A stretch of 64,000 nt of DNA from Zygnema circumcarinatum SAG 698-1b (GCA_037447605.1 CM074810.1:3382880-3446879), one strand, 5' to 3'. Counted from the first letter of the stretch, positions 35,871 to 45,613 are shown. Numbers and translations are program-made. The notes: generated from the sequence alone by a model not told the origin.

Positions 35871-38800
35871 TCACCGGAGAAAAGGCTTTTGAGACAGAGG
35901 AGGAATGAAAGATTCACTATTGTTGTCAGATCTTGAAATGGAAAACCCATATGGAATCTGAGCTGCAACTTCCTCCATGGCCTTCTCCTCCTCCTCCTCA
36001 TTATTAGGAAGAGAGTCGCCGTCGAGATTTGCCAGTACAGTCTCTAGTTGTCGCGTCACGTCCGCCATGGATGGCCGGGCCTTGGCATCATCTTTTGTGC
36101 AGTTCTGGGCGACCTCCACAATGATCTTCATGGCCTCCTTAGAGTAATCTTCGTCAAGTCGTTCATCCACAATTGCGTCGATCTGACCTTTTTTGATGAG
36201 AGGGAGCGCCTGTGAAGAATGAAGATAGTTGAAAAAAAGTTTGAAAACTCCGATAGGTGAAAAAAGAAACCATTCAGATAGGAAACTCCTAAGAAAAAGA
36301 AAGTGCTTGGACGATCGAAGACATGCTGTTCAATACGGGTAGTGAGACATGACAATGTCAAACTTGTCTCACTTTAGGGTAATTATCTTAGAGAGAGAGA
36401 GAGAGAGAGAGAGAGAGAGAGAGAGAGAGAGAGAGAGAGAGAGAGAGAGAGAGAGAGAGATGAGCTCGTATCATTTTTAGGGTACTCGTATCATTTAGAC
36501 TTTGTAAGCTTTGTCGGGTTTTCTAGGGTTTGTTGAGAGTTTCAAGGTTTTGGAGAGAGTGGATAAAAAAAGGAACTCGAGATTGGTTCACAATGTGACA
36601 TCCCTGACCAAATCAGTATCAAGAGGTTGTTGAAAGTTGAAACATACCCATCCTTTCACATGGACCACTTTCGAACTCAGAAGAGAGTCTTGATCAGTGA
36701 AGATAGCCCTCTTTCCAGTGATCAGCTCCCAAAGCACAACGCCAAAGCTGCGCATAGAAGATGCCACTTACGTAATTCCTTAGGGTTATACATAATCATA
36801 CCATCGCTTGACTCCAAACATTGCTCTGAGAACAGTGGAGACATCAACCCCTATATGCAGCTCTTCAGAATACGTTCTAAAGTAGTGGTGCCCTTTCAGT
36901 TGTTGGGCTGCACATTATCGAGAGAGAGAGAGAGAGCGAGAGAGAGCGAGAGAGAGAGAGAGAGAGAGAGAGAGAGAGAGAGAGAGAGAGAGAGAGAGAG
37001 AGAGAGAGAGAGAGAGAGAGAGAGAGAGAGAGAGAGAGAGAGAGAGAGAGAGAGAGAGAGAGAGAGAGAGAGAGAGAGAGAGAGAGAGAGAGAGAGAGAA
37101 CATATGTATGCATTGGCCTTGGCTCTCTCTCTCTCTCTCTCTCTCTGATTGGACTTGCCTGTAAACATCATACTTTGTGGAGACTGGAGCAACCCTTGGC
37201 ACGCGCGGGTCCAAGTATCTGCCAATCAGCACACCTCGTTAGAAACTCTAATCTAAGAGGCACGAAACTTAATTCAACTTGTCGGACGGCTAAACAAAGA
37301 GAAAATTGCCCCAGTCTAATCGTGTCTTTTCCAAGAATGTGAACTGGCATTGATCTCGCATGGAATGTACATGAAAAAGAAAGACAATAGAAAATTAGAA
37401 CAGAGAAAAAGAGCACCTAAATGTAAGCATTAAACAATCTTCATTAATCCTCACCCTATAGTTCCTGCGTGTGCTGTTAAGGTTCCGAGAAAATCTGTCG
37501 CTAAAGAAGCATGGCCGGTGATGATTTCAGGAGATTCTGCCTCTTGATTTCCATGTATTGTGCTGATTCTGACAGAATCAGTTACTTGGCTTCCTTGTGT
37601 TGTGCTGGTTGCAACAGAATCTGTTACTTGGGTTCCATGTAATGCAATTGTTTCAAAAATTTCCGTCACTTGAGGTCCAAGATCAGTGAAGCTTTCGTCA
37701 GTTTCAGTCTCTTGGGTGAGTCTTCTGATAAGGCCAAAGTCCGCAATCTTCGCCTGAAAGATAAGAAAAAAAAAACCATTATAAGTTGGCTCAGTTACTT
37801 TTGAAAGCAACAAGGAAAAGCAACAGTTCTTCGCTCTCTCTCGCTCTCCCTCACTCTCCCTCTCTCCAATAGAAAGACAACATCATAAACCTAAGAAACC
37901 TCAAACAGTTGTGCGAAGTTGTGAAGCCCTAAAGTGCGAAACCCTAAAAACCCTAAAACCCCTAAAAACCCTCAAAACCCTAAAAACCCTAAAAACCCTA
38001 AAAACCTAAAAATCCTAAAAACCGTAAAAACCCTAAAAACCCTAAAAACCCTAAGAACCATAAGAACCCTAAACAACTCTAAGGCATGACAGGCAGAGAG
38101 GGAGCTGAGCGGACCTCCATTTTCTGCGTGAGTAGAATGTTGTCCGGTTTTATGTCTCGGTGCACAACAGGCTCCTTCGCAAAGTTGTGCAAGTATTGCA
38201 GAGCTCGCGCTACTCCCACAGCTATGTTAAGCCGCTGCTTGAAGGTGAGAGGGGAGTAGCCAGACTCTGTCAATAGCAACAATTCGATTGAAAATGTGAG
38301 AGTCTTGTATTACTATAAAATCCTCCAGATTGATCCCTTTAAACCCTGAAAACCCTAGAAGCCCTAAAAACCGTAAAAACCCTAAACACCCTAATAACCC
38401 TAAAAACCCTAAAAATCCTGTATGTGAGGTTTGAATATTTCCCCCACCCGGCGTGGCATCGACATGTGCCCGCAAAGTGCCGTTCTGAATGAATTCGTAC
38501 ACGAGAATGTGCTCTCCATTTTGACTGCAGAAGCCGAGCAGGGCCACTATGTTGTTGTGACTCATGGTTGAAAGCAGCTCCACCTGCACAGCAACAAAGC
38601 TCCAAAACTTAATGCTTTAGCATTTCTAAATATAACAAGGCTCGAATTGAAAGGGAAGAGCAACCCCACCTAAAATTCCCATTCGTAAACGACCCTAAAA
38701 ACCCTAAAAAACCGACCCGAACTAGTTTCTCTTTTCATTTGTTCCTATCGATATCCAAAAACATAAACATAATGTGTACATAAAGCATAATGGATGGTGA

Positions 38801-44800: not shown

Positions 44801-45613
44801 TCCGCTCGCACTCTGCCATTTCTCAGCTCTCTCTCCGCTCTCCCTCCACTCTCACTCTGCCATTTCTCAGCTCTCCTCTGCTCTTTCTCCGCCCCTTTCT
44901 TCTCTTAAGAGGTCGTTTGCTCTACAGTTTGCCCTCCTCGCAGCCCCTCTGAAAATCATTGAAAAGCAGTTAATCGCAGGAGATCAGAGCGTGGCTCACA
45001 TTTCAGTAACGCGGCCGTCTACGTCACATGTGATGAATCTCCAGGAGGCGCAGAGAGTGTTGCTAGAATTCCAAGACGTGAGATTTGAAAAGTCCTTGAA
45101 ACTCGCTTTGACAGCAAGAAGAGCATCCCCTGCTTCCCGATCACAAGCATACGCATCCGCGTTCAAATCCAAACTAGTCATAGGGAAACCAAAGCAAAGC
45201 AAAAGCCCGACTCGTCTTCCCCTCTCTCACACATTCTCTGCAATAGAAATGCTAGAATATTTCCGTCTCCATTCTCAATTCTCAATTTCTATGTCTGCAA
45301 TTGAGTGCAGGGATAGCCGAGGGAGTAATCCGAGAGTACATAGCAGCAGGGCTTGAAGATCATGGGCAGGGCAGGCAGGGAAGGGAGGGAGAGAGGGAGG
45401 GAGAGAGGGAGGGAGGGAGGGAGGAAGGAAGGGAGGGAGGGAGGGAGGGAGGGAGGGAGGGAGGGAGGGAGCGAGCGACGGAGCGGGCGGGCCCTCACTG
45501 TCGCGCTCGTCGATCTGCTGTGCAACGGTATGCGGCAAAATGGCGGCGGCGGTGGCGGCGAGGAGCAGCACGAGGAGGCCGGCAGGGCAGGCGGGCAGCC
45601 GGCGGGCCGCCAT
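35871..45613 (-). CDS. Receptor-like kinase (IRAK/Pelle type): signal peptide - LRRNT - ~8 LRR - EGF-like - PAN/Apple - TM - kinase
   Basis: Exons 45613-45499 (signal peptide), 45129-45000 (LRRNT), 72-nt LRR exons 44579-44508, 44316-44245, 43955-43884, 43251-43180, 42550-42479, 42090-42019; 41514-41168 (2 LRR + EGF), 40822-40568 (PAN), 40382-40350 (linker), 39706-39578 (TM LVVVLGSSIGAAIAFAAILLLFCFCF then RRKK). Kinase exons from ~39215 to 35871 contain GTGGFG, WAVKR, FERE, HRDIKPDNILL, DFG, GTIGYLDP, DVYSFG and RPSM. Confidence 0.93.
36390..37146. repeat. (GA)n microsatellites 36390-36460 and 36920-37098, plus (CT)n 37123-37146
   Basis: Read directly, RLK kinase introns. Confidence 0.95.
37945..39325. 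repeat. Several (AAAAACCCT)n / (TTTTTAGGG)n 9-mer arrays in RLK kinase introns
   Basis: Blocks at ~37945-38070, 38340-38420, 38865-38965 and 39280-39325; the same 9-mer occurs at 41090-41140, 43640-43665, 46305-46362 and 61340-61360. Confidence 0.9.
42675..43042 (+). repeat. Intronic telomere-like array, mainly TTTAGGG with interspersed TTAGGG (RLK LRR intron)
   Basis: A pure TTTAGGG run at ~42905-42995 is flanked by mixed 6/7-mers. Confidence 0.95.
44648..44880 (+). repeat. ~44-bp minisatellite x5 in RLK intron 2
   Basis: CTCTCCCTCCACTCTCACTCTGCCATTTCTCAG repeated. Confidence 0.85.

Follow-up and report, generated by a model that had tools for sequence, protein, structure and literature searches.

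A predicted receptor kinase of Zygnema circumcarinatum with LRRs, an EGF-like knot and a PAN/apple domain in one ectodomain

Layout of the predicted gene

Positions 45613-35871 on the minus strand of the Zygnema circumcarinatum SAG 698-1b window considered here (the whole 64,000-nt stretch GCA_037447605.1 CM074810.1:3382880-3446879) hold a gene of 18 exons, joined in silico by canonical splice sites, whose 905-codon coding sequence carries neither an internal stop nor a frameshift. The predicted product is a 905-aa type-I receptor kinase. From the N-terminus it has a signal peptide, LRRNT_2 and about eight plant-type LRRs; these lead into a Cys-rich cap that includes an EGF-like knot and then into a PAN/apple domain, and a TM helix connects this ectodomain to an RLK/Pelle-type RD kinase. 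All 17 introns end in CAG acceptors and begin with GT donors, with the exception of one consensus GC donor, AG/GCAAGT (slashes mark boundaries), found at exon 16. Spliced as predicted, one gene would encode the whole receptor kinase from the LRRs through the kinase, and the roughly eight LRRs, PAN/apple domain, TM helix and RD kinase that an earlier note had located here are all present.

Exon 1 (45499-45613, minus strand, as are all features below) contains the ATG at 45613 and the signal peptide, with an RR n-region, a Leu/Ala core and TVA/QQ. Its donor (ACA/GTGAGG, phase 1) scores best among the candidates, the 3′ end being surer at the other exons. A second possible donor is found at 45480. 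For exon 2 (45000-45129), which encodes the LRRNT_2 N-terminal cap (Pfam 6.7e-10), the acceptor was chosen by a splice-site scoring matrix (PWM) combined with an even cysteine count, 45173 being the alternative acceptor. An N-terminal model pairing donor 45480 with acceptor 45173 was dropped, since the 45499/45129 pair scores better and gives the even count. The mature ectodomain has 18 cysteines: two in the N-cap, ten in the cap/EGF block and six in the PAN domain.

Downstream of the N-cap, six exons of exactly 72 nt (44579-44508, 44316-44245, 43955-43884, 43251-43180, 42550-42479 and 42090-42019), all in phase 2-2, each encode one plant-type LRR. Every one of them fits the plant-specific 24-residue consensus and four of the six match Pfam LRR_1 at 14-16 bits each. 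At the DNA level they are mutually 76-90% identical and their introns have diverged. SERK genes likewise place a single LRR on each 72-nt exon. Extra LRR exons hidden inside the 630-nt introns were looked for and rejected. LRRNT_2 and plant-type LRRs in the ectodomain, with a TM helix and a kinase further along the same predicted chain, are the features of an LRR-RLK.

The TM helix (27 residues, followed by an RRKK stop-transfer signal) is encoded by exon 11 (39578-39706), a 129-nt exon in phase 1-1. Exons 12-18 (35871-39213) encode the juxtamembrane region and the RLK/Pelle RD kinase in an open frame with Pfam and PDB matches: exons 12-14 at 39213-38990, 38583-38448 and 38266-38115, exon 15 with the DFG motif and an activation-segment insert at 37455-37753, exon 16 at 37218-37159, and exons 17 and 18 at 36747-36648 and 36209-35871, the latter including the stop. 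Pfam Pkinase and PK_Tyr_Ser-Thr match the kinase exon pieces, and for all four kinase exons tested the best solved matches are FERONIA, BAK1, SYMRK, BRI1, an L-type LecRK, Pto and IRAK1, with BAK1 leading for the juxtamembrane/Gly-loop exon (6e-10). These matches place the predicted kinase in the RLK/Pelle (IRAK) superfamily.

The catalytic residues of an RD kinase are in place (GTGGFG, WAVK, the alphaC Glu, HRDIKPDN, DFG and RPSM, with the subdomain-XI Arg). The activation segment is unusual: Arg takes the place of the APE glutamate (YLDPR), and exon 15 encodes, after DFG, an insert of about 70 residues that is rich in Thr/Ser and includes a tandem duplication of 42 bp. The idea that short introns within the exon excise this insert was judged unlikely and rejected. 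A kinase with such a segment might be atypically regulated or impaired.

The longest intron of the gene (861 nt) separates the PAN exon from the TM exon and contains a 466-bp GA/CT microsatellite. A break at this point would suit a reading in which two adjacent genes, one for a secreted LRR-EGF-PAN wall protein and one for a TM-kinase, are misread as a single gene, and kinase-less LRR-EGF proteins do occur in the same window; alternatively, an assembly join could have produced a chimera. Yet no N gaps are found between 35871 and 45613, and the PAN exon closes on a strong donor rather than on a stop, the read-through stop coming only 28 codons further. The TM exon begins in phase 1 without a Met, neither it nor the kinase exons offer a plausible start codon of their own, and the phases agree across the EGF-like, PAN and TM exons. 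Considering both sides, we hold two genes or a chimeric join to be very unlikely, and the single receptor kinase gene is the reading retained below.

A CT-rich tract (40240-39730) lying between PAN and TM was considered as coding for a Ser/Pro stalk and rejected, since the GA/CT microsatellite opens all three frames; no upstream acceptor fits the phase-1 PAN donor either, and similar tracts are found in other introns.

The PAN/apple exon and the EGF-like knot

Exon 10 (40568-40822) encodes the PAN/apple domain. Its 255 nt in symmetric phase 1-1 exactly reproduce what the earlier note had described, and its boundaries (acceptor ...tgtgcag/G, donor AA/gtaagt) are among the best splice sites of the gene, with scores of 13.2 and 8.9, respectively. 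The 84-codon frame is intact and contains all core PAN cysteines, and the repeats flanking the exon are microsatellites only.

In Pfam, the exon matches PAN_4 with an E-value of 3.5e-5 (24.2 bits, gathering cut-off 27) and, more weakly, PAN_2 at 1e-3 (19.5 bits, cut-off 21.1), while its language-model features score 0.94 against PAN clusters. A phmmer search returned 29 matches among 1.84 billion protein representatives, none with an LRR or a kinase. Ten of these 29 were scanned with Pfam and proved to be bona fide PAN proteins, except for one in which TPR/CHAT domains predominate. In the alignment the conserved PAN core C...C...C.GF...CWLK is visible, and C34, C38, C44 and C63 of the exon correspond to invariant or near-invariant PAN cysteines. 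An AlphaFold2 model (pLDDT 85.9) folds into five strands and a helix; the best 50 PDB matches returned for it by Foldseek are all PAN/apple/MANEC folds, and structural matches in the Atlas reach TM 0.75-0.87. A PAN/apple profile or structure match, on which the earlier note had made its reading depend, is thus available in both forms. Judged by its sequence matches and by the modelled fold, the PAN assignment of exon 10 is genuine, well beyond chance.

Whether the exon is used is a separate matter. A symmetric 1-1 exon keeps the frame when skipped, so PAN could be facultative or unused and the true product an LRR-EGF-TM-kinase, or the locus could be decaying or unexpressed and yield no product at all. 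The product of this gene was not found in the protein libraries searched with the PAN-exon and exon 9 queries, and the spliced exon 9/exon 10 junction had 0 exact matches in metagenome contigs, both consistent with such a scenario; the oddities of the kinase (the Arg in place of the APE Glu, the 70-residue insert and its 42-bp duplication) could be taken as signs of decay. Against skipping stand splice sites of this strength, and against disuse an exon that retains its open frame, its complete set of core cysteines and a confidently predicted fold. Decay would have to have spared all 905 codons from stops and frameshifts. As to expression, a share of 0.28-0.40 of the words in 38000-43999 occurs in sequencing runs labelled as coming from the same organism, a signal above zero but not localisable within that interval. 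We regard an unused PAN exon or a silent locus as unlikely, and the PAN exon is treated below as part of the predicted receptor.

The preceding exon 9 (41168-41514, ending in phase 1) encodes the final two LRRs of the array, both degenerate, and then a cap with four cysteines and an EGF-like knot with six. Its block of ten cysteines includes the string that the earlier note had read as an EGF-like module. The six cysteines of the knot have a spacing that fits an EGF-like domain. Profile matches are non-significant throughout: Pfam EGF_2 gives an E-value of 0.51 and the Atlas 0.78, and a two-sequence profile of the module finds the L-selectin EGF and EGF in the PDB at E-values of 0.4-1.2. A structure model of exon 9 built on the two-sequence alignment is of low confidence (pLDDT 52) and would not support a search by fold. 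Taken together, cysteine spacing and profiles weakly support an EGF assignment for the knot. A 115-aa exon 9 protein query returned no homologue among proteins passing a length filter, which excludes full-length kin.

A second copy of the module is found within the same window, 22 kb away from the receptor kinase gene, in a kinase-less LRR paralogue (13416-13727; tblastn 5.7e-6). This LRR-cap/EGF-like module is 32% identical to exon 9, conserves all of the EGF-like cysteines and itself gives weak EGF-family Pfam matches. Given that the EGF-like module sits on the LRR-cap exon and is common to a kinase-less LRR paralogue, it appears to belong to an LRR cassette rather than to a PAN-linked stem.

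S-domain likeness and proposed origin

For the origin of this architecture the earlier note had offered two alternatives, an algal relative of the S-domain stem and an independent shuffle. According to the first, EGF-PAN-TM-kinase would be an ancient streptophyte unit, carrying an LRR head here and a bulb-lectin/SLG head later in land plants. The succession of EGF-like module, PAN, TM and RD kinase indeed matches that of G-type lectin/S-domain kinases, whose domain list includes EGF, PAN, TM and kinase (RLKdb preprint). The plant-derived PAN_2 model recognises the PAN exon, as given above, and plant S-domain clusters are among its structural matches in the Atlas (TM 0.75-0.76). The S-domain family is reported as absent from Zygnematophyceae (PMC10868138), a gap that an algal intermediate would fill.

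Several lines of evidence speak against such a homology. PAN_4 outscores PAN_2, and a PDB sequence search with the PAN exon retrieves the factor XI and prekallikrein apple domains at 7e-8, whereas the SRK ectodomains in the PDB give no sequence match even at E<=10. The modelled fold follows the same trend, with a TMq of 0.70 (2.2 A) for factor XI against 0.53-0.57 for SRK. PAN stands alone on a shuffle-ready 1-1 exon. Among the solved-structure matches of the four kinase exons no SD-type kinase was seen and no subfamily stands out. B_lectin or SLG domains had no match on any exon scanned with Pfam, and LRRNT_2, the LRRs, the cap/EGF block and PAN leave no stretch of the ectodomain unassigned. 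The resemblance of this "EGF-PAN stem" to SRK seems to be a coincidence, since the EGF-like module shares the LRR-cap exon and recurs with LRRs in the kinase-less paralogue, and since the closest named library relatives of the PAN exon are apple proteins of an annelid (Owenia) and of oomycetes (Pythium), with none from a plant kinase.

An ancient unit shared with the S-domain kinases is, in our estimate, highly improbable, and we find it exceedingly doubtful that the EGF-PAN-TM-kinase part survives in this alga from the stem ancestral to land-plant S-domain kinases, as it stood prior to gaining a bulb-lectin head. Were it so, the origin of the family would move into Zygnematophyceae, where reviews list it as absent. 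It is more likely that this unusual mosaic is a local exon-shuffling product than a forerunner of land-plant S-domain receptors; of the two alternatives, the independent shuffle is favoured and the S-domain relative finds no support.

The locus is probably best read as a single type-I membrane RLK/Pelle receptor kinase gene, that is, an LRR receptor kinase into which exon shuffling brought a PAN/apple domain. Its symmetric exons are of two kinds, the PAN and TM exons in 1-1 and the LRR exons in 2-2. In the ancestor, an LRRNT would have been followed by LRRs that had multiplied through exon duplication, by an LRR cap bearing the EGF-like knot, and by the TM helix and kinase. A phase-1 intron would have separated the EGF-like exon from the TM exon, itself in phase 1-1. 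Into that intron a self-contained phase 1-1 PAN exon may have been inserted. We infer this direction of shuffling from exon phases, not from phylogeny, and the alternative history is that an LRR-EGF-PAN wall-protein gene was fused to a TM-kinase.

As to function, we speculate that the short LRR solenoid would bind a peptide or protein ligand, and that the membrane-proximal PAN might bind a glycan or protein partner or pair two receptors as in SRK. In SRK, PAN contributes to receptor dimerisation, and by analogy a dimerisation role for the algal PAN is plausible. The signal would then pass to the RD kinase, in which all catalytic residues are kept, and the Thr/Ser-rich insert of about 70 residues could be a phospho-regulatory region.

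Plants rely chiefly on receptor-like kinases for sensing at the cell surface, and the way in which the ectodomains of these kinases came together in algae related to land plants is a subject of active research. LRR, EGF-like, PAN, TM and kinase together are found in no database protein or paper searched; in the literature searched, no paper describes LRR, PAN and kinase on one chain. We conclude that, among LRR receptor kinases, this predicted ectodomain is a new variant. A mechanism of assembly can be read from this single gene: multiplication of LRRs on phase-2 exons, a cassette of LRR cap and EGF-like knot common to secreted proteins, and a separate PAN exon, in phase 1-1, within the phase-1 intron that precedes the TM exon. 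It also cautions that the order EGF-PAN-TM-kinase alone is insufficient as a sign of S-domain ancestry. If the gene is expressed, the known repertoire would gain an LRR+PAN receptor, and with it a natural setting for asking whether a PAN next to the membrane serves dimerisation or glycan binding in a kinase.

Comparison with known receptors and PAN proteins

Among algae, a parallel is offered by the PAN receptor kinases of Chlorella vulgaris (Chlorophyta), which, in the available part of the source (PMC12757656), have composite ectodomains without a bulb-lectin head, like the gene described here, and whose RLK ectodomain modules include both LRR and PAN. They belong to a different algal lineage, and an LRR+EGF+PAN order within a single chain is not described in the same part of the source.

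The PAN domain itself shares its fold and core cysteine pattern with the apple domains of factor XI and plasma prekallikrein and with the PAN modules of HGF and apicomplexan microneme proteins. Those proteins have unrelated architectures and biology, and the algal PAN differs by two additional paired cysteines, C2/C42 of the exon.

With the G-type lectin/S-domain kinases SRK, LORE and ZmPK1 the algal gene shares the membrane-proximal order of EGF-like module, PAN, TM and RD kinase. It differs from them in having neither B-lectin nor SLG, in a PAN that scores nearer to apple/PAN_1/PAN_4 than to PAN_2, and in carrying PAN on its own exon and the EGF-like module on an LRR exon.

Plant LRR-RLKs (e.g., those of the SERK/BAK1 type, RLKdb family) have in common with the algal gene the signal peptide, LRRNT_2, 24-residue LRRs, a single TM and an RLK/Pelle RD kinase. 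What sets the algal gene apart from them is the long activation-segment insert and the Arg for the APE Glu in its kinase and, in its predicted ectodomain, an EGF-like knot and a PAN/apple domain placed between the LRRs and the membrane.

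Gene model and leucine-rich repeats

The window DNA is eukaryotic and rich in introns, and on its minus strand between 45613 and 35871 it carries stop-free stretches with receptor-kinase peptides whose order and frames can be joined at canonical splice sites. Spliced in silico, they form a predicted gene of 18 exons (E1-E18) and 905 codons with no internal stop, reproducing the LRR, PAN, TM and RD kinase chimera of an earlier sequence-only note with an intact frame and Pfam and PDB matches. Using a splice-site matrix built from 16 confident introns of the same gene, all acceptors are CAG and the best first intron runs from donor 45499 (ACA|GTGAGG) to acceptor 45129, phase 1 at each. 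An initial assembly of 18 exons and 926 codons, also free of internal stops, was superseded since the matrix prefers these sites. Under the 905-codon model, the ectodomain has an even count of 18 cysteines. Intron 16 (37159/37158) is GC-AG, and its consensus donor AG|GCAAGT at 37158 restores the conserved kinase motif ...KYDVYSFGVV...; GT alternatives were rejected because they break DVYSFG. No N gap lies inside the gene, the closest being at 46681. Confidence in the model is lowest at the first intron and at the juxtamembrane junction (39578/39213).

E1 (start 45613, donor 45499) encodes a signal peptide and E2 (acceptor 45129) matches Pfam LRRNT_2 (6.7e-10). Each of the six 72-nt, phase 2-2 exons E3-E8 encodes one 24-residue plant-type LRR, with LRR_1 scores of 14-16 bits apiece. 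These exons share 76-90% DNA identity but their introns have diverged, which marks them as old exon duplications, not assembly copies; the long introns contain no additional LRR exons. E9 (41514-41168, 347 nt, phase 2 to 1) contributes two degenerate LRRs, in agreement with the approximately eight counted previously, along with four cysteines of the cap and an EGF-like string that has six.

A telomere-like 9-bp unit, TTTTTAGGG / AAACCCTAA, forms short arrays of 6-16 copies in at least five introns (37939-38082, 38341-38419, 38883-38966, 39277-39331 and 41090-41144) and in the flanks of the gene, and translations show it near 43630-43700 and 46240-46380 as well; these arrays are an interstitial satellite. 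Intronic GA/CT microsatellites of up to 466 bp (39733-40198, 36920-37099, 36390-36460) are open in three frames and resemble Ser/Leu/Pro-rich 'stalk' coding sequence, a trap for gene models of this genome. A plus-strand open stretch at 34728-35042, ending about 800 bp from the kinase gene's stop codon, probably represents the final exon of a neighbouring gene that is transcribed convergently.

PAN exon and EGF-like module

The PAN identity of E10 (40822-40568, minus strand), the core of the finding, holds, and the exon has the 255-nt length and symmetric 1-1 phase originally described. Pfam returned PAN_4 (3.5e-5, 24.2 bits against a cut-off of 27) and PAN_2 (1e-3, 19.5 bits against 21.1). Among PDB sequences, factor XI (7e-8) and prekallikrein were matched through their apple domains. 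For an AlphaFold2 model made from the homologue alignment (pLDDT 85.9), the 50 best Foldseek matches in the PDB were all PAN/apple/MANEC, factor XI reaching TMq 0.70 (2.2 Å). The earlier note had suggested looking for a PAN profile or structural match, and both were obtained. ESM Atlas gave TM 0.75-0.87 against PAN-bearing clusters and language-model features grouped E10 with PAN clusters at 0.94. Among 1.84 billion representatives, phmmer matched 29 proteins; nine of the ten long matches scanned have strong PAN_1/PAN_4, several being multi-apple, and the tenth is mostly TPR and CHAT domains. The alignment has a C...C...C.GF...CWLK core with C34, C38 and C63 invariant. The gene's own protein was absent from the libraries searched with E10 (the same 1.84 billion) and with E9.

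Support for the EGF identity of the E9 module is much weaker than for PAN: Pfam EGF_2 has an E of 0.51, the Atlas score is 0.78, a two-sequence profile reached L-selectin EGF and EGF itself in the PDB at a non-significant E of 0.4-1.2, and the E9 fold model (pLDDT 52) is too poor for use. A kinase-less paralogue in the window, with LRR exons upstream, has an LRR-cap/EGF-like exon (13727-13416, minus strand) that aligns to E9 at 32% identity, keeps every EGF-like cysteine and gives weak cEGF/FXa-inhibition/EGF Pfam matches. This shared cysteine spacing speaks for a real disulfide module in E9; the noted cysteine string stands, its EGF assignment not reaching significance. Beyond the gene under study, no PAN or kinase similarity was found in the window. 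The paralogue spans 13029-18300 (minus strand) in single-LRR exons, with the LRR-cap/EGF-like unit as last module, after which the frame continues into a CT microsatellite and no donor is obvious; the paralogue is also interrupted at 16613-16622 by an assembly gap of 10 N.

Transmembrane helix and kinase

E11 (129 nt, phase 1-1, minus strand) encodes a TM helix of 27 residues and then RRKK, and E12-E18, on the same strand, encode the kinase. Plant RLKs and IRAK1 were top matches for each of four kinase exons tested; summed over the four, FERONIA reached ~128 bits and BAK1 ~123 bits, with SYMRK, BRI1 and an L-type lectin kinase likewise ranking high. The kinase is an RLK/Pelle member of no clear subfamily. 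It retains the Gly loop, Lys, alphaC Glu, HRD, DFG and subdomain-XI Arg, bearing out the RD kinase reading. From DFG to YLDPR the activation segment has 101 residues, 26 of them Ser/Thr, and Arg replaces the APE glutamate (DPR, not (A/D)PE). A 42-bp tandem duplication (37549-37641, 2.2 copies, 80% match) lies within its Thr/Ser-rich insert. The kinase is probably active but atypically regulated.

Relation to S-domain receptor kinases

The architecture had been proposed to be either a relative of the S-domain (SRK-like, G-type lectin) kinases or an independent shuffle, and four observations favour the latter. The E10 PAN looks to be of generic apple type: PAN_4 outscores PAN_2, no SRK ectodomain in the PDB was matched even at E<=10 against 7e-8 for factor XI, and SRK is a poorer structural fit to the model (TMq 0.53-0.57). 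The named closest library PAN domains come from an annelid and oomycetes, and none of the 29 phmmer matches has an LRR or kinase motif, so that plant S-domain kinases are absent from this set. The EGF-like knot is uncoupled from PAN, sharing an exon with the LRR cap and accompanying LRRs in the kinase-less paralogue. The symmetric 1-1 PAN exon stands alone, with a phase-1 donor before it and the TM exon, also symmetric 1-1, after it, the textbook geometry for exon insertion into a phase-1 intron. Finally, no B-lectin or SLG domain occurs in the gene. We see what appears to be an intact LRR receptor kinase gene with an EGF-like/PAN region added next to the membrane, most likely a lineage-specific product of exon shuffling.

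The earlier note knew of no published account of this architecture, and our literature search, with some key RLK-evolution papers beyond its reach, found no paper on LRR, PAN and kinase in one chain. According to a 2024 review (PMC10868138), S-domain, WAK and CR4-like families are lacking in Chara, Zygnematophyceae and Coleochaetophyceae. In a 2026 survey (PMC12757656), chlorophyte RLKs are described as having LRRs, PAN domains and ectodomains of composite make-up; PAN is present in 9 of the 36 RLKs of Chlorella vulgaris. In the RLKdb preprint, G-LecRLKs are those with a bulb lectin together with PAN, EGF or both, and LRR/LRRNT HMMs define the LRR-RLKs; under these definitions the gene is an LRR-RLK with extra modules.
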